Shown here: piece after piece, positions 7,201-64,000 of the stretch
Numbering within the stretch: position 1 is the stretch's first letter
How the letters are laid out: each line of letters begins with the position of its first letter
Source of the DNA: Mizuhopecten yessoensis
Taxonomy: Eukaryota
DNA length: 64,000 nucleotides
NCBI RefSeq assembly: GCF_002113885.1
Contig: NW_018408433.1
Span: 403,226 to 467,225 of the forward strand
Direction: 5' to 3'
Notes under the pieces: generated by a model
The model's input: only the letters and a program-made list of their open reading frames with translations
What the model was told of the DNA's origin: nothing
Database searches by the model: none
Made by a program: the position numbers and the translations under genes

Positions 7201-7326
7201 GACTACCTCCATGATTATATGCGTAGACCCACTAGGCGGCCGTCGTTAAAAACTAATATACTGGATTTAAGTTACCGATTAACTGGGGTATTCTGAACGT
7301 CGTCATTATACATAACACTAGTTGAT

Positions 7327-7860
7327 TATACATTAACAGAATCAGCGAAAGTGAAACTGTATACATTAACAGAATCAGTGAAGGTGACACTGTCTACTTT
7401 AACAGAATCATTGAAGGTGACATTGTCTACTTTAATAGAATCAGTGAAGGTGACACTGTATACATTAACAGAATCAGTGAAGGCGTCACTATACATTAAC
7501 AGAATCAGTAAAGGTGACAATGTATACATTAACAGAATCAGTGAAGGCGACACTATACATTAACAGAACCAGTGAAGGTGACACTGTATACATTAACAGA
7601 ATCAGTAAAGGCGACACTATACATGGACAGAATCAGTAAAAGTGACACTATACATTAACAGAATCAGTAAAAGTGACACTATACATTAACAGAATCAGTG
7701 AAGGTGACACTGTATACATTGACATAATCGGTGAAGGTGACATGGCATACATGATCAGAATTAACGAAAGTGACACTATACATTAACCGTATAAGCAGAG
7801 GTTACACTGTTTACATTTAAAGGTAACACTGCCTTATTTACAGTATCAGTTTACAACCAA
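7327..7860. repeat. 31/33-bp minisatellite (TATACATTAACAGAATCAGTGAAGGTGACAC[TG]), copy A
   Basis: Direct tandem periodicity with mixed 31- and 33-nt units. Confidence 0.93.
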
Positions 7861-9271
7861 TACTTCGACCACTTCATGCATGAACTGCACAGTATTTGTA
7901 CACTTAGCCTGGAGATGGTTCTGTTGTATGCATTGTTAAAAAGGCCCAACGAGCGCTTAAGTAAATAAGGAATAACAAATCTTCAGAAAAGTTTCCGATA
8001 TAACCCCCGCCGTCTACATTGACGGCCAGTGGTTTTATCCCTGTAGACACGGGACGGGCCTGATATTCGAGACAAGCCGCTCTAGAGTGCAGCGTGTTTC
8101 CAATTAAGTCCCTGTTTGTGTAAATTTAATAATCTAACGGACAATGCAACGATTTGTCAAAAACCAACCATTACAGTTTAGGTAAAAATCTACGAATATA
8201 AAATATTTACACAAAATACGTATTATCAGTTTACACTTTCACAGCATAAAAATTGCTTCCCTCAAATAAGACAATCCCGACGAACCGATTCGTTTCGGTA
8301 AATTGTCGGATTACATATAGTAGATCGAATGGTACATAGACCTACCTACCGTTCTCGTGTGAAACACACTATCAGTAAAGATTAAACCGATATATAAAAT
8401 ATCACGTGACCTTCTTATGCTTCATATAATAACTTTTTCTATAGTATTTCTTTGATAGACGCATAATAGTACATTGTAGATGGCGTTGATAGGCTTTTCC
8501 TTCATACTTTCTTTTCTATATATTTCATGTCATTTATTGAAATGAAACAGACTATATTTCGCTTTTAGTTTATATGCTATCTTTTTAATATTATTTCATA
8601 ACTTTATTTCTTGAGATAAAATGCATGTTTAGCTAAAAGGCTAGTCTCCCATATGGTCCATTTGTTAGTAAAATGCACGTGTTTGTTAAAAGATGAATAT
8701 TAATTATTGACACAAACGTAATGTGTCATATTATATTACAGTTACCTTCATAAAAATGTCACATAATACATAGTTTCGAGCAAAAGTGTTTCGTCAGTTA
8801 AATGGAAAAAAAACTATTATTGCTAAAGTGATACATACACTATCTTATTTTGGAACGTTAAAGCAAATTTGATATTCACTTCGTCATGCACAACATGGTC
8901 TTGAGTTAATCTACGTTCATATATACGTCAAAGAGCTCGTCAAAAAAATCTGTCACTCGGTTGACGTCACACAAATTATCTTTATTTAGTTTTGGTCCTA
9001 GTTGATACAATCTTATGACAATAATAAAGTCTGCGTAAAAAGTAAAGGATTTAGTTTTCAAAACTTTTTAAAGGTTTATAATTAAAGTGCATTTGTATAC
9101 ATCAATCTGGCTTTTAGTGTGTTCGGTTGACGTCAGACTATTATTACTATTCATGGTATCTAGTAAAATGTAATTACATCCTTTAATGTTGTAAACCTTT
9201 TAAGTTGTCCTGTACACATATTGTATACAACACATCGTCCGTCAACTGTCCGAAATAGACATCGCAATAAG

Positions 9272-9292
9272 ATCATCATCATCATCATCATC
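9272..9292. repeat. (ATC)n microsatellite
   Basis: atcatcatcatcatcatcatc; the equivalent position in copy B is the N gap. Confidence 0.85.
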
Positions 9293-10042
9293 ATTATTTC
9301 GTTAAATGTGGTGTCGCAGGAGGTAAATATTCGTCTCTTTGGTGTACTGATCTGGTTGAACCAACTTGAATAGCAAGTTACTTGTGGCCACTTATGTAGC
9401 CTTATCATTTAAATAAAATTTGTACTGGGAGTTACAAAAATAGTAAGATAGTTTAATAGATTCAGGGTGCACGCTAACTACTACTTTAGTAGCCCGATCT
9501 ATTTCTCATTTTCACTAATCCCGACATGACTGTGGATCCAAATTAAGATCCTGTTGCTTATTTGGTCACAACTGTATCTCTTTAACGCTTTAATATGAAA
9601 AGGTCTTTAAACTTAAGTTAGATTCATTTAAACATCTTCACATGCTATTTCAAAAACATTAGAAACGTTCTATATGATTAAAACGCTGATATGAAATTTA
9701 AACACCACTTTAGAATTTGAAAGGTCGTTAAATGACTTAAATCAGAAATGATTGCATGAAACATTTAAAAAAAAAGATTTATGAGGTGTTATGTGTTGGT
9801 CTGGATCGAATTGCAAAGAATGACTAACGATATGTTTGTATTTAAAGTAATATAAAAATACATCGGTTTTAATACTTAGCACCACACCGATCTTTTTGAG
9901 CAGATAACATACCGGTGTATCCTTCCATACCATAATTAGGCGGACCACTAGGCGGCCGTCGTTAAAAACTAATATACTGGATTTAAGTTACCGATTAACT
10001 GGGGTATTCTGAACGTCGTCATTATACATAACACTAGTTGAT

Positions 10043-10745
10043 TATACATTAACAGAATCAGCGAAAGTGAAAATGTATACATTAACAGAATCAGTGAAGG
10101 TGACACTGTCTACTTTAACAGAATCATTGAAGGTGACAATAAGGTGACAATGTATACATTAACAGAATCAGTAAAGGTGACAATGTATACATTAACAGAA
10201 TCAGTAAAGGCGACAATGTATACATTACCAGAATCAGTGAAGGCGACAATGTATACATTGACAGAATCAGTAAAAGTGACACTTTACATTAACAGAATCA
10301 GTGAAGGTGACACTGTATACATTAACAGAATCAGTGAAGGTGACACTATACATTAACAGAATCAGTAAAGGTGACACTGTATACATTAACAGAATCAGTA
10401 AAGGCGACACTATACCTTAACAGAATCAGTAAAGGCGACACTATACATTGACAGAATCAGTAAAAGTGACACTATACATTAACAGAATCAGTAAAAGTGA
10501 CACTATACATGGACAGAATCAGTAAAAGTGACACTATACATTAACAGAATCAGTAAAAGTGACACTATACATTAACAGAATCAGTGAAGGTGACACTGTA
10601 TACATTGACATAATCGGTGAAGGTGACATGGCATACATGATCAGAATTAACGAAAGTGACACTATACATTAACCGTATCAGTAGAGGTTACACTGTTTAC
10701 ATTTACAGGTAACACTGCCTTATTTACAGTATCAGTCTACAACCC
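10043..10745. repeat. 31/33-bp minisatellite, copy B (~170 bp longer than copy A)
   Basis: Same unit as 7327-7860; the A-to-B offset rises from 2716 before the array to 2886 after it. Confidence 0.93.
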
Positions 10746-11407
10746 ATACTTCAACCACTTCATACATGAACTGCACAGTATTTGTAAACTTAGTCTGGAG
10801 ATGGTTCTGTTGTATGCATTGTTAATAAGGCCCAACGAGCGCTTAAGTAAATAAGGAATAACAAATCTTCAGAAAAGTTTCCGATATAACCCCCGCCGTC
10901 TACATTGACGGCCAGTGGTTTTATCCCTGTAGACACGGGACGGGCCTGATATTCGAGACAAGCGCTCTAGAGTGCATTCTACTGGTCTGCTAAATGAAAC
11001 AGCGTGTTTCCAATTAAGTCCCTGTTTGTGTAAATTTAATAATCTAACGGACAATGCAACGATTTGCCAAAAACCAACCATAACAGTTTAGGTATAAATC
11101 TACGAATATAAAATATTTACACAAAATACGTATTATCAGTTTACACTTTCACAGCATAAAAATTGCTTCCCTCAAATAAGACAATCCCGACGAACCGATT
11201 CGTTTTGGTAAATTGTCGGATTACATATAGTAGATCGAATGCGACCTTAATCCTATGTACAATTGAACCCTGCCACGCTACTCCCCCCTTTTTAAATGTG
11301 TTCGCCCTCGAACACCACAACCCAGGTTCTAACTCCCTGTCACCACAGGGAGGGCCACGGACACCATTTGTAACATATCCTGTTGTTGTCCAGCAGTCTC
11401 CCTGACT

Positions 11408-12370
11408 GTGGCTACAACAGGATATTCTCCTATATATTCCAATACAAATGTAAGAAGCACAAGTACTACTAGCTCTATGCCATTGTATTCTACTTGGTCT
11501 GGTAGCCATATGCCCAGTTGTGAGTCAAGAGCTCAAGGTCACTCTACCTATAGAGTCAGGCGTAAAGAAAAAGAACCCCAGACCTATGACGGTACTTCTA
11601 GTTTTAGGGATTTTCTGATACATTTTGAACAAATTTCGACTTGGAATGAATGGTCCGACTCGGATAAAGCCCAGCAACTAACAATGTGCCTTAGAGGACA
11701 GGCCCAGAGAATCCTGTCTGAATTACAGCCTTCAGACCTGATGCAATTTAATGCTGTGAAAATGGTATTGAGCAAACGCTTTGACCCTCCGGGAAGGGAG
11801 GCTGCGTATAAATCAGAATTTCGTAATCGATACCGTAGGGAGGGGGAGAGTCTGGTTAATTACGGGGAGGTTTTAAGAATTGCTGCTCGCAAAGCATACC
11901 CAGACAAACAGCTGGACTTGTTAGAGGGTGACATTATAGATCAGTATATTGATGGCCTCAATAATTACGAGCTAGGTCGTCATGTCCAATTTTGCCACCC
12001 TAAAACACTTGACCGGGCAGTGAGTGCTGCAATTGAGTTTGAGTCTTTTAGTGCTAGGCAGGTGAGTCAAGTTCCTGTTAGGAAACCCAGGGAGTTAAAC
12101 CCAGAAGCTACAGTTTTTGTTCAGACTGGTACAGAAGAGTCTAGCAAAACGGCTGAAAGAATCCCTGAGCCAGATTTGGGTACTCTTATACTGGAACAGT
12201 TTGAAAAGCTGAATAGGAAATTGAATTCCAGAAGTAGAAATTTTGGGAATAAGAATTCAAGTACATCTTCTTCACAGAAGAAGTGTTATGTATGTGATGA
12301 ATTAGGGCATATCTCATATAACTGCCCTAAGAAGGAACCTGCCAACGAAATGTCAAAGCAGGTAAACTAG
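11408..12370 (+). CDS. gag: Gag (capsid-like domain plus CCHC zinc knuckle); true start uncertain
   Basis: EPQTYDGTSSFRDFLIHFEQISTWNEW...LRGQA capsid motif; CYVCDELGHISYNC is Cx2Cx4Hx4C; lies immediately upstream of pol. Confidence 0.92.
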   Translation: MATTGYSPIYSNTNVRSTSTTSSMPLYSTWSGSHMPSCESRAQGHSTYRVRRKEKEPQTYDGTSSFRDFLIHFEQISTWNEWSDSDKAQQLTMCLRGQAQRILSELQPSDLMQFNAVKMVLSKRFDPPGREAAYKSEFRNRYRREGESLVNYGEVLRIAARKAYPDKQLDLLEGDIIDQYIDGLNNYELGRHVQFCHPKTLDRAVSAAIEFESFSARQVSQVPVRKPRELNPEATVFVQTGTEESSKTAERIPEPDLGTLILEQFEKLNRKLNSRSRNFGNKNSSTSSSQKKCYVCDELGHISYNCPKKEPANEMSKQVN

Positions 12371-12426
12371 ACAGAGCTGGTCTCGGGGCCAGAGTACCAG
12401 CTCCGGAATCCGAGTGTAAAGGGCCC
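12361..12426 (+). promoter_or_regulatory. -1 programmed ribosomal frameshift signal (G_GUA_AAC plus hairpin/pseudoknot)
   Basis: Heptamer 12361-12367 sits right before the gag UAG. pol is in the -1 frame and open from 12331. After a 6-nt spacer comes stem GAGCTGGT(12374-81)/ACCAGCTC(12396-403); loop GGGCC can pair with GGCCC(12422-26). Confidence 0.75.
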
Positions 12427-12432
12427 GTCATA

Positions 12433-15400
12433 GTGTTGAATACGATTCAACCCAGCTTGTTTGCTGGAATTAGTGTGGGTAGTATAAATTCTAATTTTCT
12501 AGTAGACTCAGGATCTTCAGTGACTTTGATAGATGTTGACTTATACAGCCAATTGGAGGGAAGGTATAAGCCTGAGTTGCGAAGCTGTAATATCAAGCTG
12601 ACAACAGCCTCGGGAAGTAGCATTGTGGTATTTGGGAAGGCGGAGTTTGTATTCCAGTTGGGAGGTCGTAGTTTCATACAAGAAGCTATAGTGGCTACTC
12701 TTCAGAGTCTTCAAGGTATTTTGGGTATTGATTTTCTCTCTGGACATGGGGGAGAATTGAATTTTGGTGATAAGATTCTGAAGCTAGGGGGCCACAGGGT
12801 TAAACTTGGTGCAGAACCTATAAATGGGTGTGCCCATATCAGGGTATCGGAAACTGTTTCTATTCCCAGGAATTCCGAGTGCTACTTTGCAGGGTATGTT
12901 GAAGGAAAGATCGATAGTGAGTTGGGTATAGTTGAGCCCACGAAGCTGGTGTCCACCCAGGGCCTGCTGTTAGCAAAATCATTGATAGCTCCTCAGAAAG
13001 GAGGGGGGATAACTCTGTCTGTCTTAAACCTGACTGATAAGGATATTAAGATTCAGGGTAACACCTTTGTAGGTAGTCTGCAACCTGTTGCGCAGGTGCA
13101 TGAGATAACTGATGGAGGTACAGATTACAATCAAGATTCTAAGTTACCTCCGCATTTACAGGATATGTTGGATAGAACTTCAGACAAGTTGTCTAAGGAT
13201 CAAAAAGGGAAGGTGGGAGAATTATTGCATGAGTACCAGGACATATTTACTGGTCCTGACGGTATACTAGGACGAAGTTCAATAGTTGAGCATACCATAG
13301 ATACACAAGGGGCTCTTCCAATAAAGATGGCACCCAGAAGGATTTCACCTGCACAAAAGGTAGTTGTAGAGCAAGAACTTGATGCTATGCTGGAGAAGGG
13401 AGTCATTGAGCCTAGTTCAAGTCCCTGGTCAGCTCCTGTAGTGCTATGCACTAAGAAGGATGGCTCTGTGCGCTTTTGTATTGATTACCGTCGCTTAAAT
13501 TCCGTCACCCGTAAAAATGCATTTCCCTTGGTAAATATCGAGGAAGCATTATCTGCACTTTCAGGCGCGAAATGGTTTTCAACTCTTGATTTGGCAAGCG
13601 GATATTGGCAGTGTCGCATGGACAAAAATGATAAAGAAAAAACTGCATTTGCCACCCATAAAGGGCTCTATGAATTTAATGTTATGCCCTTCGGGCTTTG
13701 TAATGCCCCCGCAACATTCTCTAGACTTATGCAATTGGTCTTGGGGGGTTTACAGTGGTCAAAATGCCTCTGTTATTTAGATGATGTAATTGTCTTCGGA
13801 ACCACATTCGAGATAGCCATGTTGAGTCTGAAAAGTGTTTTTGAGTGTTTTAGAACTACAAACTTAAAACTTAAACCCAAAAAGTGTACACTTCTACAGA
13901 CACAGGTTTCTTATTTAGGTCATATTGTGTCAGAGGATGGGGTGAGTTGTGATCCTGGGAAAATTACAGCAGTTAAAGATTGGCCAACCCCTACTTCCTC
14001 TGCTGAAATTAGAAGTTTTTTGGGCCTGGCAGGGTACTACAGAAAATTTGTACCAAATTTTGCCGACATATCCAGTCCTTTAACTAAGTTGACTAGGAAA
14101 GGGAAGATATTCAAGTGGGATGATAAGTGTGACAAAGCATTTCAAAAGCTGAAAGACCTGTTGGTGTCCAGTCCTATTCTCTCATACCCTCAGGATTCAG
14201 GCATGTTCATATTAGATTGTGATGCAAGCAATGTGGGGATGGGAGCAGTACTGTCCCAGATACAGGGTGGAGAGGAAAAAGTTCTTAGCTATGCTAGTAA
14301 AACACTGAGCAGGGCTCAGCAGAACTATTGCACTACTCGTAGGGAATTACTGGCTGTGGTTACCTTTTTGAGGCACTTTAAACATTATGTTGGGGGTACC
14401 CATTTCCTCATACGTACTGACCATGCCTCGTTAACTTGGCTTAAAAACTTTAAGGAGCCGGAAGGTATACTAGCCAGGTGGATCAGCGTTATTGATATGT
14501 TTGACTGTGAGATTAGACACAGACCTGGTACTCAACATGGTAATGCTGATGGGTTATCACGCAGACCCTCGAAGCAGTGTGGAAGGGAAGCATGCCCTGA
14601 CTGTGTAGCTTCGGTACATGTTATCTCTACCCCGGAAGACAAAACAAAACCGTCTGTGGGGGAAAGGGATAGTCAAGAGAAATTTACTAACTGGATAGAT
14701 TCTTGGGGGGTGGAGGGTTTAAGGAAGGAGCAGGATAGCGATCCCCACATTACCGCATTTAAACAGCTCAAAAGGGATAGGGATAGTAAACCAAAAAGAA
14801 GTGAGATGAGTGGGTTACCATACGAAGTCCGAGTATACTGCCAAATGTGGGATAGGGTTTCTCTCTCGGAGGATGGGATAGTGTATGTTACCGATTCTGG
14901 GCCAGATGGGAACACAATGTATAGGGTGCTAGCCCCTGTAAGTATTAGGGAACAGATTTTGTCCCAGCTCCATGATAATCGGACATCAGGTCATTTAGGG
15001 AGGGATAAGACAATCTCTCAGATCAGGAGAAGGTTTTATTGGCCTGGCTGGTCTGATGACGTAAGTCGATGGTGCAGAAAATGTGAAGTTTGCGCACGCC
15101 GCAAGCCTGGTCCGGGTAAGGGGAAGGCCCCATTGCAGTCATCCATACACCAGGTTTCCCGTCCCCTAGACAGAATATCTATTGACATTCTTGGTGGTCT
15201 ACCAGTAACATCCCATAACATGCGTTACATCATGGTTGTCTGCGATTACTTCAGTAAGTGGACAGAAGCTTATGCCCTCCCAGATCACACAGCCCTTACA
15301 GTAGCTGATAAGCTGTGCTCCGAGTTTATTAGTAGGTTTGGGGTACCTTACCAAATACATACTGACCGGGGAGGTGAATTTGAAGGGGAACTGTTCACTC

Positions 15401-16206
15401 TATTGTGCCAAAAATTAGGGATTGAGAAAAGTCGTACCACCCCCTATCACCCATCATCCAATGGATTAGTAGAAAGATTCAATAGGACATTGATACAGAT
15501 GTTGTCTACTTTTGTAAACACCCAGTATGACGATTGGGATGATCATTTACCCTATGTTCTGATGGCATATAGAGCTACTAACCAGAGCAGTACAGGCTGT
15601 AGCCCCAATCTTGTTATGTTGGGTAGGGAAGCCACCTGTCCTTTAGATATAGTTGTTGGAGTGCCTGCCCCTGACCAAGACCCTGTGTGTCAAAACATGT
15701 ATGTTAACTGGCTTCAACACAGTATGAGGAATACATTTGATTTTGTGGCCAAAAACTTGCAAGTTGCGGCTGAGAGACAGAAAAATCAGTATGATCAAGG
15801 GTTACGACCCCGTGGTTATGAAGTTGGTGACTTCGTGTGGCGTTGGTACCCACCCGCGTTGTCATGTAAGCTAGGGAAGGGGTGGACAGGTCCTTATAAG
15901 GTAGTTGGAATTTTGTCCGCTTTGACTTATTTAGTACAAAGTAAACCAGGTGTCCGTCCGATGTCTGTCCATGTAGATCACCTAAAACCCTTTGAGGGAA
16001 GGTCTATTCCTGTGGCCTGGAGGGAGGAGGATCAAGGGGAGGATGATGGAATGTCGGATGTGTCCGTTTCCCCGGGGGTTACAGCTGACAATGGCCTTGA
16101 CCTTGCCCAGGAAGTGGGTGTGAAGGACAATTATACGTCAGCTGCGCCTGCAGTAAGTCGTTTCGGGAGGAGAATCAAACCTAAAGTGCTATTCAGCCCC
16201 TCGTAA
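12433..16206 (+). CDS. pol: Pol polyprotein: aspartic protease, reverse transcriptase, RNase H, integrase (frame open from 12331)
   Basis: Protease LVDSGS. RT SPWSAPVV, RFCIDYRRLN, MPFGLCNAPATF, YLDD (13774-13785). RNase H CDAS, RELLA, TDH, ADGLSR. Integrase HHCC, core ISID/HTD/LVERFNRTL, and GPY/F module WTGPY...VHVDHLKPF. Confidence 0.98.
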   Translation: MLNTIQPSLFAGISVGSINSNFLVDSGSSVTLIDVDLYSQLEGRYKPELRSCNIKLTTASGSSIVVFGKAEFVFQLGGRSFIQEAIVATLQSLQGILGIDFLSGHGGELNFGDKILKLGGHRVKLGAEPINGCAHIRVSETVSIPRNSECYFAGYVEGKIDSELGIVEPTKLVSTQGLLLAKSLIAPQKGGGITLSVLNLTDKDIKIQGNTFVGSLQPVAQVHEITDGGTDYNQDSKLPPHLQDMLDRTSDKLSKDQKGKVGELLHEYQDIFTGPDGILGRSSIVEHTIDTQGALPIKMAPRRISPAQKVVVEQELDAMLEKGVIEPSSSPWSAPVVLCTKKDGSVRFCIDYRRLNSVTRKNAFPLVNIEEALSALSGAKWFSTLDLASGYWQCRMDKNDKEKTAFATHKGLYEFNVMPFGLCNAPATFSRLMQLVLGGLQWSKCLCYLDDVIVFGTTFEIAMLSLKSVFECFRTTNLKLKPKKCTLLQTQVSYLGHIVSEDGVSCDPGKITAVKDWPTPTSSAEIRSFLGLAGYYRKFVPNFADISSPLTKLTRKGKIFKWDDKCDKAFQKLKDLLVSSPILSYPQDSGMFILDCDASNVGMGAVLSQIQGGEEKVLSYASKTLSRAQQNYCTTRRELLAVVTFLRHFKHYVGGTHFLIRTDHASLTWLKNFKEPEGILARWISVIDMFDCEIRHRPGTQHGNADGLSRRPSKQCGREACPDCVASVHVISTPEDKTKPSVGERDSQEKFTNWIDSWGVEGLRKEQDSDPHITAFKQLKRDRDSKPKRSEMSGLPYEVRVYCQMWDRVSLSEDGIVYVTDSGPDGNTMYRVLAPVSIREQILSQLHDNRTSGHLGRDKTISQIRRRFYWPGWSDDVSRWCRKCEVCARRKPGPGKGKAPLQSSIHQVSRPLDRISIDILGGLPVTSHNMRYIMVVCDYFSKWTEAYALPDHTALTVADKLCSEFISRFGVPYQIHTDRGGEFEGELFTLLCQKLGIEKSRTTPYHPSSNGLVERFNRTLIQMLSTFVNTQYDDWDDHLPYVLMAYRATNQSSTGCSPNLVMLGREATCPLDIVVGVPAPDQDPVCQNMYVNWLQHSMRNTFDFVAKNLQVAAERQKNQYDQGLRPRGYEVGDFVWRWYPPALSCKLGKGWTGPYKVVGILSALTYLVQSKPGVRPMSVHVDHLKPFEGRSIPVAWREEDQGEDDGMSDVSVSPGVTADNGLDLAQEVGVKDNYTSAAPAVSRFGRRIKPKVLFSPS

Positions 16207-16350
16207 CGTTTGTCATGTATTTCCTTGTGGTGTGTCTTCTATGTGTCTGGATGCTGTAAATAGTAAAAGGTAGAGAAACAAAAAAAAAAAAATGAGAAAA
16301 GAAGGAAAAAAAGAGGTAATTCTGTTGTGTACTTTTAGAAGGCTAAAAGC

Positions 16351-16373
16351 CTGATTTCATGTTTGTATTGTAG
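16351..16373 (+). promoter_or_regulatory. Putative splice acceptor for ORF3
   Basis: CTGAT branch-point-like motif, T-rich tract and TGTAG, ending 2 nt before the ORF3 ATG. Confidence 0.5.
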
Positions 16374-16375
16374 AA

Positions 16376-16828
16376 ATGGATATTCTGGAAATCAATACCT
16401 CCCTGCAGGATTTGGCATCGGTAAACCGGGATTTGAGGCCGGTGTGGGTAGCGGAGGGTATGTCTTGTCCTGTGTCATCCTGTGGGACAAGATTATATAA
16501 AACTTATAGTGCCATGCTCCAGCATTGGGCGGAAGTCCATGCCAGGACAGTTGAGTTACTGGGGTGTCCCAGGTGTGGATTCCACCATGTGAGGCGGAAC
16601 CAGGTGGTCCGCCATATCCGACGGCAACATGGGTTGGGGATGCAGGAAGCCAGTAGGCTGATGGGGGTTTCGGGGTCTGCCTGCCGAACCCTCAATAAAC
16701 GGCATGTGCCCTCGGAGGGGATGAGCATACCTGTGAAGAGTGCACCTGCAGAAAGATGCTCAGTTGAGGGATGCTGGGAGGGGGATGACGCCTCCTTATT
16801 AGTCATGTTTGATGACCTGTTCCATTGA
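16376..16828 (+). CDS. Retrotransposon ORF3: 150-aa protein with two C2H2-type zinc fingers
   Basis: CPVSSC-x13-HWAEVH (16466-16540) and CPRC-x12-HIRRQH (16565-16630). ATG start, GC-rich composition like pol, and located between the pol stop and the PPT. Confidence 0.75.
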   Translation: MDILEINTSLQDLASVNRDLRPVWVAEGMSCPVSSCGTRLYKTYSAMLQHWAEVHARTVELLGCPRCGFHHVRRNQVVRHIRRQHGLGMQEASRLMGVSGSACRTLNKRHVPSEGMSIPVKSAPAERCSVEGCWEGDDASLLVMFDDLFH

Positions 16829-17057
16829 CTGTAATCGGAACAAAGTCAATGTCTATGGACTAAGTTAATTTTATTTTATATATGGCTTTACTGTTATTGT
16901 TATATTGAATATTGTTATTATTGTTGGATTTATTGTAATTATATATATAAGGACGTTACCGTTGTCGAGAAATATTTACGGTATATATAGTTTTGCTAGA
17001 TCTTTACTAAAGGCGAATAGTACAAGAATTAGAAAATAGTATAACTATTTTCTTATT

Positions 17058-17068
17058 GGAAAGGGAGG
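17058..17068 (+). other. Polypurine tract (PPT)
   Basis: GGAAAGGGAGG directly before TGTGTGAAAG. Confidence 0.75.
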
Positions 17069-17070
17069 TG

Positions 17071-17784
17071 TGTGAAAGTCGAGAGTATTATGAAACCTGG
17101 CCAGGTGGTTGCGAATGGGTATGAGTGATTATATATATAAGGATTGTGTTGGTGAAAGTGTCTGGATGAAAGCCTGAATGAAAGGGGTATAAGAAAGTTA
17201 TCGCATATATATCTACCGTGGGTGTTCGACGTATGTGTTACCGCTGCTATTGGGACTCTGTGTTGTTATCCGGGCTTTTACTCTTTCTAACTTCCTTCCT
17301 TATTTTAGTAACCGGTGTTTTCATTGGATGACCCCTACTCTGTGGTAAAACCGTTCTGATTGGCTACCGTGGTCTACATAACATACCCACACATGGGAAC
17401 TTGTGGAGCTGTACCAATAGCCTCGGCTGGGTATCTCCGTCTTTCTCTGTCTCTTGTCATGTGTTGTGCTGTCATTATCTTCTGACCGGTCCGTGGTGCT
17501 AGGTGGGTGTTTGTGTGTTTCTGTACTGTCCGGGGAAAGCCTTGCTAGCTGCCCGCTGTGTTTATACCGTCATGTAGTGTGTTTGTTTACACCTTTCCCG
17601 TACATGTCCCAGTAGTAGCCGGGTAGGGGTTGAATAGCTTGTGTCGTCTGTGTATGTATGTTATATGCTCTATGTAATAAATCTATTAAATGTTATACAC
17701 TATGTGAGTTGTTTGTAATGGAAACCCTGGAACCCCAGGCTCAATGAACCTGGGTAAGCAAAGCCAGGACTTGCTCCTGCTACA
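17071..17784 (+). repeat. 3' LTR (~714 bp, TGT...ACA)
   Basis: Starts after the PPT with TGT (17069 or 17071) and ends GCTACA where host sequence resumes; AATAAA at 17676-17681. There is no second LTR in the window to confirm the limits. Confidence 0.75.
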
Positions 17785-18702
17785 GACCTACCTACCGTTC
17801 CCGTGTGAAACACACTATCAGTAAAGATTAAACCGATATATAAAATATCACGTGACCTTCTTATGCTTCATATTATATCTTTTTCTATAGTATTCCTTTG
17901 ATAGACGCATACTAGTACCTTGTAGATGGCGTTGATAGGCTTTTCCTACATAATTTCTTTTCTATATATTTCATGTCATTTATTGAAATGAAACAGGCTA
18001 TATTTCGCTTTTAATTTATATGCTATCTTTTTATATTATTTTGTAACTTTATTTCTTGAGGATAAAAAGCATGTTTAGCTAAAAGGCAAGTCTCCCATAT
18101 GGTCTATTTGTTAGTAAAATACACGTGTTTGTTAAAAGATGAATATTAATTATTGACACAAACGTAATGTGTCATATCATATTACAGTAACCTTCATAAA
18201 AATGTCACATAATACATAGTTTCGAGCAAAAGTGTTTCGTCAGTTAAATGGAAAAATCTATTATTGCTAAAGTGATACAAACACTATCTTATTTTGGAAC
18301 GTTAAAGCAAATTTGATATTCACCTCGTCATACACAACATGGTCTTGAGTTAATCTACGTTCATATATACATCAAAGAGCTCATAAAAAAAACTGTCACT
18401 CGGTTGACGTCACACAAATTATCTTTATTTAGTTTTGGTCCCAGTTGATACAATCTTATGACAATGATAAAGCCTGCGTAAAAAGTAAAGGATTTAGGTT
18501 TGCATTTTTTTTCAAAAGCTTTATCATTAAAGTGCATCTGTAAACATCAATCTAGCTTTTAGGGTGTTCGGTTGACGTCAGACTATTATTATTATTCATG
18601 GTATCTATTCAAATGTTATTACATCCTTTAATGTTGTAAACCTAATAAGTTGTCCTGTACACAGATTGTATACAACACATCGTCCGTCAACTGTCCGAAA
18701 TA

Positions 18703-18866
18703 NNNNNNNNNNNNNNNNNNNNNNNNNNNNNNNNNNNNNNNNNNNNNNNNNNNNNNNNNNNNNNNNNNNNNNNNNNNNNNNNNNNNNNNNNNNNNNNNNN
18801 NNNNNNNNNNNNNNNNNNNNNNNNNNNNNNNNNNNNNNNNNNNNNNNNNNNNNNNNNNNNNNNNNN
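18703..18866. other. Assembly gap (164 N)
   Basis: Run of n; corresponds to the ~56-bp (ATC)n-containing segment of copy A. Confidence 0.99.
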
Positions 18867-20589
18867 TCGCAGGAGGTAAATATTCGTCTCTTTGGTGTAC
18901 TGATCTGGTTGAACCCACTTGAATAGCAAGTAACTTGTGGCCACTTGTGTAGCCTTATCATTTAAATAAAATTTGTACTGGGAGTTACAAAAATAGTAAG
19001 ATAGTTTAATAGATTCAGGGTGCACGCTAACTACTACTTTAGTAGCCCGATCTATTTCTCATTTTCACTAATCCCGACATGACTGTGGATCCAAATTATG
19101 ATCCTGTTGCTTATTTGGTCGCAACTGTATCTCTTTAACGCTTTAATATGAAAAGGTCTTTAAACTTAAGTTAGATTCATTTAAACATCTTCACATGCTA
19201 TTTAAATAACATAAGAAACGTTCTGTATGATTAAAAACGCTGATATGAAATTTAAACACCACTTTAGAATTTGAAAGGTCGTTAAATGACTTAAATCATC
19301 AGAAAGGATTGCATGAAACTTTAAAAAAAAAAACGATTTAAGAGGTGTTATGTGTTGGTCTGGATCGAATTGCAAAGAATGACGAACGATATTTTTGTAT
19401 TTAAAGTATTATAAAAATACATCAGTTTTAATATTTCGCACTACACCGATCTTTTTAAGCAGATAACATACCTGTGTATCCTTCCATACCATAATTAGTT
19501 ACCACTGAACAAAACTTGTTTGTGGGGTATCTTTATCTTTATCCTAGCCAATGCGATCCGTACCGAACAACACTAGCCTTTGAATGGTATATGTACCTAA
19601 ACTATCCTGGATGTGTTCTTGTTCAAATGAGTTTTACTACCGCCATTGACGTTATAGATTATTGTGGGATCGGATTGTTGTCCATTATCTACACATCTGC
19701 AGTTCGGTCCGTGCTTATTAAGAGTATTGTTACTCTCGTTATCCACAAGATGAAGGCATTATATGTCTGTCAGTATTGTAAGCTGTACTTGTACGCTATT
19801 TACACGACACCTCTCAGCAATTGACCTTTTGGGTACACACCTGCGTTTAATCCTATCATCTTAATGACGCGTAATTGAGACAAGTCAACACATAAATAAA
19901 ACTACCTCTCGTACACATCGAACTGGGGGTATAGTCAAAGTCTCTGTTGTTCTGGATAATCTCGGTTGTCACGTAAGTCAAATAAACCCCTAATACCTTG
20001 TGCATTTGTTTGCTGATCAAAGGCTAACGGCAATCATTGTATGGCCATTGAGTTTCGTAGATAACGAAGTCTAGCGACCTATGTGTTAAGAAAGATAAAC
20101 GTTAGACACACACTGGTGGTTGCACAATTAAAATTGGTAATAATACAGCAAACCGAAATTGAATTACCCTGCATCATGCTGCTGTTTCGTCCATTTTGTT
20201 GCAATTCTGTAAATTGCTTGTCAAAGGGTATCCAGCAATGTACATGTATGTTTACAACGATCAATTCCCTGTTTATCATGATTCAAACACTTTAAAGTGT
20301 AGGTTGTGTTAGTACAAGAATATATTTTTGTGAAGCGAGTAAGTATGACTGTATTTGTACGTTAAGCGGGTTGGAGTACATTAATGTCGCTGACAGAAAA
20401 GTGATTTTTAATGAAACAAATTAAACCCGATTAAGATACTTTCCCCATATCAAATAGTCTTCTCTGCAATCCGATGATTATTATACCTTCATATTTTATT
20501 TACATCATTTTAAGATTGTTTTGTATTGGCAGAATTTGTTCAAAAGTCAAATATAAGCCTTTCATAAAATATCACGACAGGCAATATAG

Positions 20590-61650: not shown

Positions 61651-64000
61651 TGGTGTAATGTGGTAATGTAATGTGGTAGTGTGATATGGTAGTATTATGT
61701 GGTAGTGTGATATGGTAGTGTACTGTTATGTGGTAGTGTAGTGTAATGTGGAAGTGTGATATGGTAATGTGATATTGTAGTGTGGTGTGGTAGTGTTATG
61801 TGATGTGTAGTGTTTTGTGGTGTGTAGTGTTATGTGGTGTGTAGTGTTATGTGATGTGTAATGTTATGTGGTAGTGTGATATTGTAGTGTGATGTGGTAG
61901 TGTAATGTGGTAATGTAATGTGGAAGTGTGATATGGTAATGTGATATTGTAGTGTGGTGTGGTAGTGTTATGTGATGTGTAGTGTTTTGTGGTGTGTTGT
62001 GTTATGTGATGTGTAATGTTATGTGGTAGTGTGATATGGTAGTGTGATGTGGTAGTGTAATGTGGTAATGTAATGTGGTAGTGTGATATGGTAGTATTAT
62101 GTGGTAGTGTGATATGGTAGTGTACTGTTATGTGGTAGTGTAGTGTAATGTGGAAGTGTGATATGGTAATGTGATATTGTAGTGTGGTGTGGTAGTGTTA
62201 TGTGATGTGTAGTGTTTTGTGGTGTGTAGTGTTATGTGATGTGTAGTGTTATGTGGTGTGTAGTGTTATGTGATGTGTAATGTTATGTGGTAGTGTGATA
62301 TTGTAGTGTGATGTGGTAGTGTAATGTGGTAATGTAATGTGGAAGTGTGATATGGTAATGTGATATTGTAGTGTGGTGTGGTAGTGTTATGTGATGTGTA
62401 GTGTTTTGTGGTGTGTTGTGTTATGTGATGTGTAATGTTATGTGGTAGTGTGATATGGTAGTGTGATGTGGTAGTGTAATGTGGTAATGTAATGTGGTAG
62501 TGTGATATGGTAGTATTATGTGGTAGTGTGATATGGTAGTGTACTGTTATGTGGTAGTGTAGTGTAATGTGGTAGTGAAGTGTGATATGGTAGTGTGATG
62601 TGGTAGTGTAATGTGGTAATGTAATGTGGTAGTGTGATATGGTAGTGTAGTGTTATGTGGTAGTGTAGTGTTATGTCGTGTGAAGTATGATGTGATGTGT
62701 AGTGTTATTTTAGTGTGTTGTGGTGTGTAGTGTTATTTTAGTGTGTTGTGGTGTGTAGTGTTATTTTAGTGTGATTAGGTGTGTAGTGTGATGTGGTTGT
62801 GTTATGTGGTGTGTATTGTTGTGTGGTGTGAAGTGTTATGTGGTGTGTAGTGTTATGCGATGTGTAGTTTTATGTAGTGAGTATTGTGGTGTGAAGTATG
62901 ATGTGGTGTGTAGTGTTATGTGGTGTGTAGTATGATGTGGTGTGTAGTGTTATGTGGTGTGTAGTGTTATGCGATGTGTAGTTTTATGTAGTGAGTATTG
63001 TGGTGTGAAGTGTTATGTGGTGTGTAGTGTTATGCGATGTGTAGTTTTATGTAGTGAGTATTGTGGTGTGTAGTGTTATGTGGTGTGTAGTGTTATGCGA
63101 TGTGTAGTTTTATGTAGTGAGTATTGTGGTGTGAAGTGTTATGTGGTGTGTAGTGTTATGCGATGTGTAGTTTTATGTAGTGAGTATTGTGGTGTGTAGT
63201 GTTATGTGGTGTGTAGTGTTATGCGATGTGTAGTTTTATGTAGTGAGTATTGTGGTGTGAAGTGTTATGTGGTGTGTAGTGTTATGCGATGTGTAGTTTT
63301 ATGTAGTGAGTATTGTGGTGTGTAGTGTTATGTGGTGTGTAGTGTTATGCGATGTGTAGTTTTATGTAGTGAGTATTGTGGTGTGAAGTGTTATGTGGTG
63401 TGTAGTGTTATGCGATGTGTAGTTTTATGTAGTGAGTATTGTGGTGTGTAGTGTTATGTGGTGTGTAGTATTGGTAATGATGTGGTGTTTAGTGTTATTT
63501 GGTGTGTATTGTTATGTGGTGTTTAGTGTGATGTGGTATGTAGTGTTATGTGGTGTGTAGTGTTATGTGGTATGTAGTGTTATGTGGTATGTAGTGTTAT
63601 GTGGTAGTGTATTGTTATGTGGTGTTAAGTGTTATGTGGTGTTAAGTGTTATGTGGTATGTAGTGTTATGTGGTATGTAGTGTTATGTGGTATGTAGTGT
63701 TATGTGGTAGTGTAGTGTTATGTGGTGTTAAGTGTTATGTGGTGTTAAGTGTTATGTGGTATGTAGTGTTATGTGGTATGTAGTGTTATGTGGTATGTAG
63801 TGTTATGTGGTAGTGTAGTGTTATGTGGTGTTTAGTGTTATGTGGTGTTAAGTGTTATGTGGTATGTAGTGTTATGTGGTATGTAGTGTTATGTGGTATG
63901 TAGTGTTATGTGGTAGTGTAGTGTTATGTGGTGTTTAGTGTTATGTGGTGTTAAGTGTTATGTGGTATGTAGTGTTATGTGGTATGTAGTGTTATGTGGT
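61651..64000. repeat. GT-rich pentamer-based satellite (TGTGG/TAGTG/TGTTA) with higher-order repeats; runs off the window
   Basis: Almost C-free + strand; ~400-420-bp blocks at ~61660/62060/62480; 63-bp units from 62995; ~20-bp units after ~63500. Confidence 0.97.

Follow-up and report, generated by a model that had tools for sequence, protein, structure and literature searches.

What does a Ty3/Gypsy retrotransposon gain from a gene with two zinc fingers, placed behind pol where an envelope gene would be expected? The question is raised by a stretch of 64,000 nt from Mizuhopecten yessoensis (assembly GCF_002113885.1, contig NW_018408433.1, positions 403,226-467,225, forward strand), referred to here as the window. 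It contains one copy of a Ty3/Gypsy element in which a third open reading frame (ORF), ORF3, follows gag and pol and precedes the polypurine tract (PPT) and 3' long terminal repeat (LTR). The sequence-only reading had described ORF3 as an intact 150-aa frame with two C2H2 fingers, an acidic/hydrophobic C terminus, no signal peptide or transmembrane segment, and an acceptor-like AG 2 nt before its ATG, and had taken it for a nucleic-acid-binding accessory protein. All of these features are present in the DNA and its translation, with the finger spacings that had been given (Table 1). The comparisons reported here show that ORF3 is a conserved gene of the element itself, and that it is not an envelope gene.

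ORF3 in mollusc Ty3/Gypsy elements

A HMMER scan of 1.84 billion representative proteins returned 198 relatives of ORF3 at E<=1e-3, 47 of them at E<=1e-10. Because there are so many relatives, and because the best of them has E=1e-34, homology places ORF3 far beyond a chance ORF. Most relatives are 90-250 aa long and align from residue 1. Both fingers were found in 82 of 103 small homologs, and the pair usually begins near residue 30, as it does in the window. Named members come from bivalves (Mizuhopecten yessoensis, Argopecten irradians, Pecten maximus, Sinanodonta woodiana) and from gastropods (Gigantopelta aegis, Biomphalaria pfeifferi, Plakobranchus ocellatus, Elysia crispata). They are annotated as uncharacterised, as C2H2-domain proteins or as 'zinc finger protein 407', so that several genome projects now list such ORFs among uncharacterised host proteins or under the last of these names. 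A word-index protein search gave one match with the single ORF3 sequence and three with a 63-member alignment (A2); a scan of JGI metagenomes with a 10-member alignment (A3) gave no relative, an exact look-up of the window protein gave no record, and Rfam gave no match on the whole window.

We then inspected the DNA around the ORF3 relatives and around the closest relatives of pol. In at least nine element families, from bivalves and gastropods alike (loci L002, L003, L005, L007, L008-L011, L013, L014/L015 and L016-L018), pol is followed on its own strand by an ORF3 homolog; the pols of these families are 46-59% identical to that of the window. The gene was present in every close pol relative inspected. 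In L002 (pol 57% identical) and L003 (55%), gag, pol and ORF3 stand on one strand, and the order gag-pol-ORF3 recurs in L005 (Argopecten), L007 (Gigantopelta; pol up to 50% locally), L008-L011 (46%), L013 (Pecten maximus; 59% over the full length in one alignment) and L016-L018 (48%). In L014/L015, a pol with integrase lies upstream of the ORF3 homolog, and a 903-aa Pecten gene model fuses reverse transcriptase (RT) through integrase to one. The order pol, ORF3, gag, pol, ORF3 was seen in L016 (1-12087), which may be a tandem pair of elements sharing an LTR or an assembly with collapsed LTRs.

Three of these loci (L005, L007 and L013) hold complete elements, whose paired LTRs are 98-100% identical, and in each of them ORF3 lies after pol and before the 3' LTR. 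The L013 element is flanked by a 4-bp target-site duplication, GTTG. In L013 and L005, a primer-binding site beginning TGGTGC directly follows the LTR and, with it, a conserved GGTAATCC; the leaders of these two elements are comparable in length to that of the window. A purine tract followed by TGTGTG was found in L001, the same as in the window, and a PPT followed by TGTA in L005, L007 and L013. The expectations that sister copies would keep ORF3 behind pol on the same strand, in the interval from pol to the 3' LTR, and that it would not prove to be a one-off host fragment, were thus borne out.

The sequence of ORF3 is constrained in a characteristic way. Across the 63 members of A2, which are 15-48% identical to the window protein, seven of the eight predicted zinc ligands (C31, C36, H50, H55, C64, C67 and H80) are invariant, and the eighth, H85, is retained in at least 90%, as are V33 and W51. 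Conservation of the ligands, which had been anticipated, is here partly by construction, as members were selected with a finger pattern; that of V33 and W51 is not. D19, W24, R79 and N107 likewise do not vary among the ten closest relatives, in which N75 and Q76 are kept in at least 90% and P119 is nearly invariant. Because of these additional residues, the N-terminal leader and the motif after the fingers are counted in the family signature. Acidic/hydrophobic C termini recur among the relatives as well. Between the window and Pecten elements, ORF3 is 31% identical and pol 59%, indicating that ORF3 evolves faster; it can still be aligned where the LTRs and spacers of the same elements cannot.

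Several copies have decayed. Reading pol takes three frames in the Argopecten copy, and in that of Gigantopelta two frames are needed for gag and two for pol. A Mizuhopecten locus retains only fragments of pol, and a single internal deletion has removed finger 1 from its ORF3 homolog. Relative to that of Argopecten, the C terminus of the Pecten ORF3 is shortened by one indel. One reading of ORF3 is that it is a chance ORF, or a fragment of a host zinc-finger gene captured once, with no role in the element, and host genomes do contain proteins with the same domain. Against this, at least nine families from two mollusc classes agree in where the gene lies, in its strand and length class, and in its N-terminal motif and ligands, and ORF3 stays open in copies with a broken pol. 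The synteny and conservation seen in these alignments already contradict such an origin, to which we attach next to no probability. Rather, a large clade of mollusc Ty3/Gypsy elements appears to have inherited the gene along with gag and pol.

Genes after pol have been described before, and ORF3 can be set against each kind. The env genes of errantiviruses and other Ty3/Gypsy elements (PMC13524379) occupy the same position and share the expectation of a spliced subgenomic RNA, whereas ORF3 encodes a small soluble zinc-finger domain without signal peptide, membrane segment or homology to glycoproteins. We considered envelope function and rejected it, since ORF3 has no hydrophobic stretch long enough to form a membrane segment or signal peptide, hits no env family in Pfam and has no match among viral structures. 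LTR retrotransposons of bdelloid rotifers and of plants have lineage-specific extra ORFs behind pol, which are in many cases spliced and for the most part have no known function (PMC5408684; Vicient and Casacuberta 2020, as cited in PMC8220671). None of these extra ORFs is a C2H2 protein in the texts searched; ORF3, unlike them, is conserved in two mollusc classes and has a domain in common with giant host proteins. The nematode-restricted CERV protein of Cer1, which shows that 'complex' LTR retrotransposons exist, has 517 aa encoded in five exons that share gag sequence, and at most a possible C4 finger (PMC10309623). ORF3, by comparison, is a single-exon, 150-aa double C2H2 domain. No homolog of CERV or Rev was among the matches of the HMMER scan, the PDB searches or the search of the viral structure database BFVD.

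We also compared the element with Troyka, a mollusc-rich lineage with CG...CG termini, a 3-bp duplication, a single Gag-Pol and a CX2CX8-10HX4C knuckle (PMC12440569). This assignment was rejected, as our elements have TG...CA termini, a 4-bp duplication (L013), separate gag and pol frames and a standard CCHC knuckle.

The literature search, over 8.4 million texts, found no paper on a C2H2 ORF3 in a Ty3/Gypsy element, Repbase reports lying outside its coverage, which agrees with the earlier impression that the lineage had not been described. Extra ORFs after pol are already known, in the form of envelope genes, CERV and the plant and rotifer ORFs; the recurrent double C2H2 ORF3 is an accessory gene of a kind that we have not found described. 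Accessory genes are what separates 'complex' from simple retroviruses. To our knowledge, few accessory genes of LTR retrotransposons are understood, CERV of Cer1 being the clearest case. ORF3 adds a third gene conserved across a clade of animal Ty3/Gypsy elements, with a confidently predicted fold of the DNA-reading type and a conserved acceptor, and so lets sequence, expression and structural data be used to ask what a retrotransposon gains from a DNA- or RNA-binding factor of its own.

Putative splice signals upstream of ORF3

Of the 12 ORF3-type genes examined, 11 have a pyrimidine-rich run whose closing AG stands 0-10 nt before the ATG; the twelfth (L015) has only a weak version. By a rough estimate that was not computed, such a configuration would occur by chance in 10-15% of places, and 11 of 12 is therefore far from chance. 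The DNA 5' of these acceptors is otherwise unalignable between families. Pecten and Argopecten share a conserved non-coding block here, with a branch-point-like TACTAAC motif about 45 nt 5' of the acceptor. One element family (L008-L012) carries two tandem ORF3 paralogs (L009 5630-6585; 125 and 177 aa, 35% identical), and an AG stands just before the ATG of each. A small hairpin-like repeat, AGGCT-AAA-AGCCT, lies at 16340-16352 in the window, about 20 nt 5' of the acceptor, and AGGCT and AGCCT are retained around a different loop in the Mizuhopecten locus (L004, about 9950-9965).

One gene model makes use of this site. RefSeq XP_033729441 of Pecten maximus (L013 6740-17056) splices an upstream exon onto the AG that stands 2 nt ahead of the ORF3 ATG, the equivalent of window position 16373. 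Its product, a chimeric 'host' protein of 188 aa, has the ORF3 of a complete young element as its body. The site is thereby taken for an acceptor; splicing of the element's own message does not follow from the model.

Candidate donors in the window are the GT at 11450, in the leader, and a GTAAGC some 35 nt short of the LTR end. The motif GAACCTGGGTAAG, some 45 nt from the end of the 3' LTR, is common to the LTRs of relatives and is donor-like in the window. When the LTRs of four element families (the window, L013, L005 and L007; alignment A4) were compared, they had in common almost nothing but their termini and one short U5 motif of RAAYCTGGG type, at 17739-17751 in the window, about 45 nt before the 3' LTR end, which makes a good donor in the window though not in all relatives. 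In Pecten and Argopecten, the first gag codons are directly followed by a donor-like GTAA that would be in phase with the acceptor; the arrangement fails in Gigantopelta.

On the comparative data and the gene model, ORF3 is probably translated from a subgenomic RNA from which gag-pol has been spliced out. An acceptor placed just before the ORF3 ATG would make that ATG the first start codon of the message, or one in phase with the first.

Predicted fold and candidate targets

The classical C2H2 ligand pattern, C-x2-4-C-x12-13-H-x3-5-H, is present twice in ORF3, and in the helix of finger 2 the positions that usually contact bases (aa 73, 75, 76 and 79) are occupied by R, N, Q and R. Pfam adds little: the window protein falls below every gathering score (best 17 bits, against cut-offs of 27), and the 63 members of A2 match only generic C2H2 finger families or give scattered chance matches, none of which spans the whole domain. 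The commonest family matches 17 of the 63 at E<=0.01; bit scores per member were listed for the first member only.

AlphaFold2, run on the alignment, returned a model with a mean predicted local distance difference test score (pLDDT) of 87.2 and a predicted template modelling score (pTM) of 0.70. Residues 21-120 score above 90 and the tail about 50. The predicted domain, roughly aa 1-125, has a helix at 10-20, two beta-beta-alpha fingers whose helices (44-55 and 74-85) bear the His ligands, and then one more helix and a strand; the final 20 residues (about 131-150), acidic and hydrophobic in composition, are disordered. The product would thus be a small soluble protein in which a compact domain of about 125 residues is built around two C2H2 fingers and followed by a short tail.

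Foldseek superposed the finger pair on the DNA-bound pair of Tramtrack (2drp) with a template modelling (TM) score of 0.76 and a root-mean-square deviation (rmsd) of 1.3 Å over 57 columns. Only the finger pair found a match in the PDB, with none for the whole domain, and the search of viral structures in BFVD gave nothing. A profile search of the PDB matched fingers of CTCF, TFIIIA, Tramtrack and Zif268. ORF3 shares with Tramtrack, and with those CTCF fingers that have H-x4-H spacing and a long linker, the ligand spacing, the beta-beta-alpha fold and polar or basic contact positions, and with Tramtrack also the relative orientation of the fingers. It differs from classical C2H2 proteins in its conserved 30-residue N-terminal leader with a helix, its conserved helix and strand after the fingers, and an N-x-[KR]-[YF]-[VI]-x-P-G motif; these all belong to one confidently predicted domain, and no solved structure matches the whole. 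The model and the profile search, which support the sequence-only reading, predict two tandem C2H2 fingers of the DNA-binding type, set within a larger domain that is novel.

One way to put these features together is as follows. The finger pair would bind double-stranded DNA in a sequence-specific manner, the tail would recruit host factors, and ORF3 would regulate transcription driven by the element's own LTR. The account as a whole, namely an inherited accessory gene expressed from a spliced RNA and encoding a duplex-DNA-binding regulator of its own LTR, is the one we put forward, tentatively, as plausible and somewhat short of probable.

Several observations weigh against it. The contact residues of finger 2 are fairly constant in close relatives while the LTRs are almost wholly divergent, and such constancy would fit a conserved target better than LTR sites that differ from family to family. 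In the model, the N-terminal helix and the segment after the fingers pack on the fingers and could restrict wrapping around DNA. C2H2 pairs can bind RNA as well, and in a single-sequence search of the PDB the best match was a ribosome-associated C2H2 protein, through finger 2. As for expression, comparison by phase and position found no splice donor common to all relatives, and the first exon of XP_033729441 lies 3.2 kb outside the element, with the evidence behind the model not visible.

Some of these points lead to RNA. ORF3 could be a helper that binds unspliced element RNA or complementary DNA (cDNA) for export, packaging or strand transfer, in the manner of CERV, Rev or C2-L1Tc. An element that splices needs an export route for its unspliced genomic RNA, and Cer1 meets this need with a protein made from a spliced message (PMC10309623). 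Another parallel is C2-L1Tc, from the long interspersed nuclear element (LINE) L1Tc of Trypanosoma cruzi, a nucleic-acid chaperone with two C2H2 motifs and a preference for RNA (PMC2805920). It resembles ORF3, for which binding is only predicted, in having these motifs at the 3' end of a retrotransposon; unlike ORF3, it belongs to a non-LTR element and to the main polyprotein region, and the two were compared by description only. The finger region of ORF3 is also rich in arginine, and the ribosome-associated match of finger 2 points the same way. On the other side, gag already provides a CCHC nucleocapsid knuckle, neither CERV nor any viral protein showed homology in the HMMER scan or BFVD, and the finger pair superposes best on DNA-bound pairs. 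Moreover, if splicing here serves the expression of ORF3 only, export alone does not explain why the gene has been kept. We consider an RNA-binding helper unlikely, though it is the main rival.

The constancy of finger 2 could also mean that the conserved target lies in the host genome. ORF3 would then bind conserved host DNA and tether the pre-integration complex, as the N-terminal zinc finger of R2, a non-LTR element, does. Contact residues conserved across families in different hosts would suit such a target, and C2H2 fingers guide R2 to its site (PMC10499050). However, known LTR elements target through integrase, and the integrase of the window element has its own C-terminal domain. The insertion contexts are unrelated, being a host tandem duplication in the window and the GTTG-duplicated site in Pecten, and no common flanking motif was noticed at the insertions seen. 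Integration targeting therefore strikes us as improbable, and regulation of the LTR by the DNA-binding finger pair remains the reading that we prefer.

The same domain occurs in proteins of host type. With a profile built from the alignment, we located 4-23 tandem, nearly whole ORF3 domains, spaced 110-220 residues apart, in mollusc proteins of 1000-5000 aa, the largest of which has 5062 aa. Two of these giant array proteins are products of neighbouring genes in Sinanodonta woodiana, and one of 2522 aa is on contigs of 9-10 kb. In Elysia crispata (L006 10001-26947), several multi-exon ORF3-like genes form a cluster, and neither gag nor pol lies within 27 kb; the genes may belong to the host or be domesticated copies.

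These proteins raise a further alternative, in which ORF3 serves counter-defence by mimicking or competing with the giant array proteins, or in which those proteins are domesticated copies of ORF3 that restrict the elements. The arrays of up to 23 whole units and the Elysia cluster are in its favour, as is the element family with two tandem ORF3 paralogs, which shows that the unit duplicates readily. Nothing, however, ties the giant proteins to control of elements; we rate this alternative as quite improbable. A broader idea, speculative and rather unlikely in our judgement, is that the ORF3 domain is a sequence-specific DNA-binding module borne by retroelements and repeatedly taken up and multiplied by mollusc genomes, or the reverse, with element and host using the same DNA-reading domain against each other. 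If true, this would be an invertebrate counterpart of the arms race between zinc fingers and transposons, with the finger module shared by both sides.

The copy in the window

The features of the window element are collected in Table 1. Its gag has both Retrotrans_gag (aa 92-185) and zf-CCHC (aa 291-308) domains above Pfam cut-offs, and matches gag of relatives in single high-scoring segment pairs. The domain order of pol, as given by Pfam, is protease, RT, RNase H and integrase, which is that of Ty3/Gypsy elements.

Table 1. Coordinates of the element and its parts in the window (1-64,000; aa, amino acids)
Feature	Position	Strand	Remarks
Ty3/Gypsy element copy	11242..17784	+	leader, gag, pol, ORF3, PPT, 3' LTR; right end 17783/17784 (1-nt ambiguity)
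Leader-like stretch	11242..11476	+	5' of first in-frame gag ATG (11477); donor-like aat/gtaaga, GT at 11450-11451
gag ORF	11408..12370	+	320 codons from mechanical start; first ATG 11477; free of stops and frameshifts
pol ORF	12433..16206	+	1257 aa; -1 frame relative to gag, likewise in relatives; free of stops and frameshifts
Protease (Pfam)	~12487-12735		in pol
RT (Pfam)	~13453-13929		in pol
RNase H (Pfam)	~14116-14496		in pol
Integrase zinc domain (Pfam)	~14935-15108		in pol
Integrase core (Pfam)	~15157-15453		in pol
Integrase C-terminal domain (Pfam)	~15889-15990		in pol
pol-ORF3 spacer	16207..16375	+	A-rich run, hairpin-like repeat, pyrimidine-rich run, acceptor-like AG 16372-16373
ORF3	16376..16828	+	150 aa, ATG start; between pol and PPT/3' LTR
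Finger 1	16466..16540	+	C31-x4-C36-x13-H50-x4-H55
Finger 2	16565..16630	+	C64-x2-C67-x12-H80-x4-H85
Polypurine tract	17058..17068	+	abuts 3' LTR
3' LTR	17069..17784	+	TGTG...CTACA; TATAAG 17188-17193, AATAAA 17676-17681

The copy is incomplete, because no second copy of the LTR, and hence no 5' LTR, was found within the 64-kb window, although its three genes are free of stops and frameshifts and each aligns with relatives in one piece. No target-site duplication is visible at the element edges, and no primer-binding site was recognised in 11242-11476. Incomplete cDNA insertion, deletion or an assembly error may account for the loss of the 5' LTR. The Ty3/Gypsy assignment stands despite the missing 5' LTR and duplication, both of which are met with in relatives.

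Long direct repeats at 7229-11241 and 17784-19498 were considered as LTRs and rejected. They derive from a host unit of about 2.7 kb (7229-9939) that is duplicated in tandem, with the element splitting the second unit, one part of which (A') ends at 11241 and the other (B') resumes at 17784. The unbroken paralogous unit continues through 8331-8338. Six bases that the intact unit has at the insertion point are missing from both element edges. Each host unit contains an array of 31-33-nt tandem repeats (7327-7817 and 10043-10708), and a run of N occupies 18703-18866, inside B'.

Two further repeats lie elsewhere in the window. One is a tandem array at 870-1693, with about 27 copies of a 30-nt unit; the other, a satellite rich in GT and made up of units of about 17 nt, extends from 61649 to the window end at 64000 and has a GC skew of 0.97.

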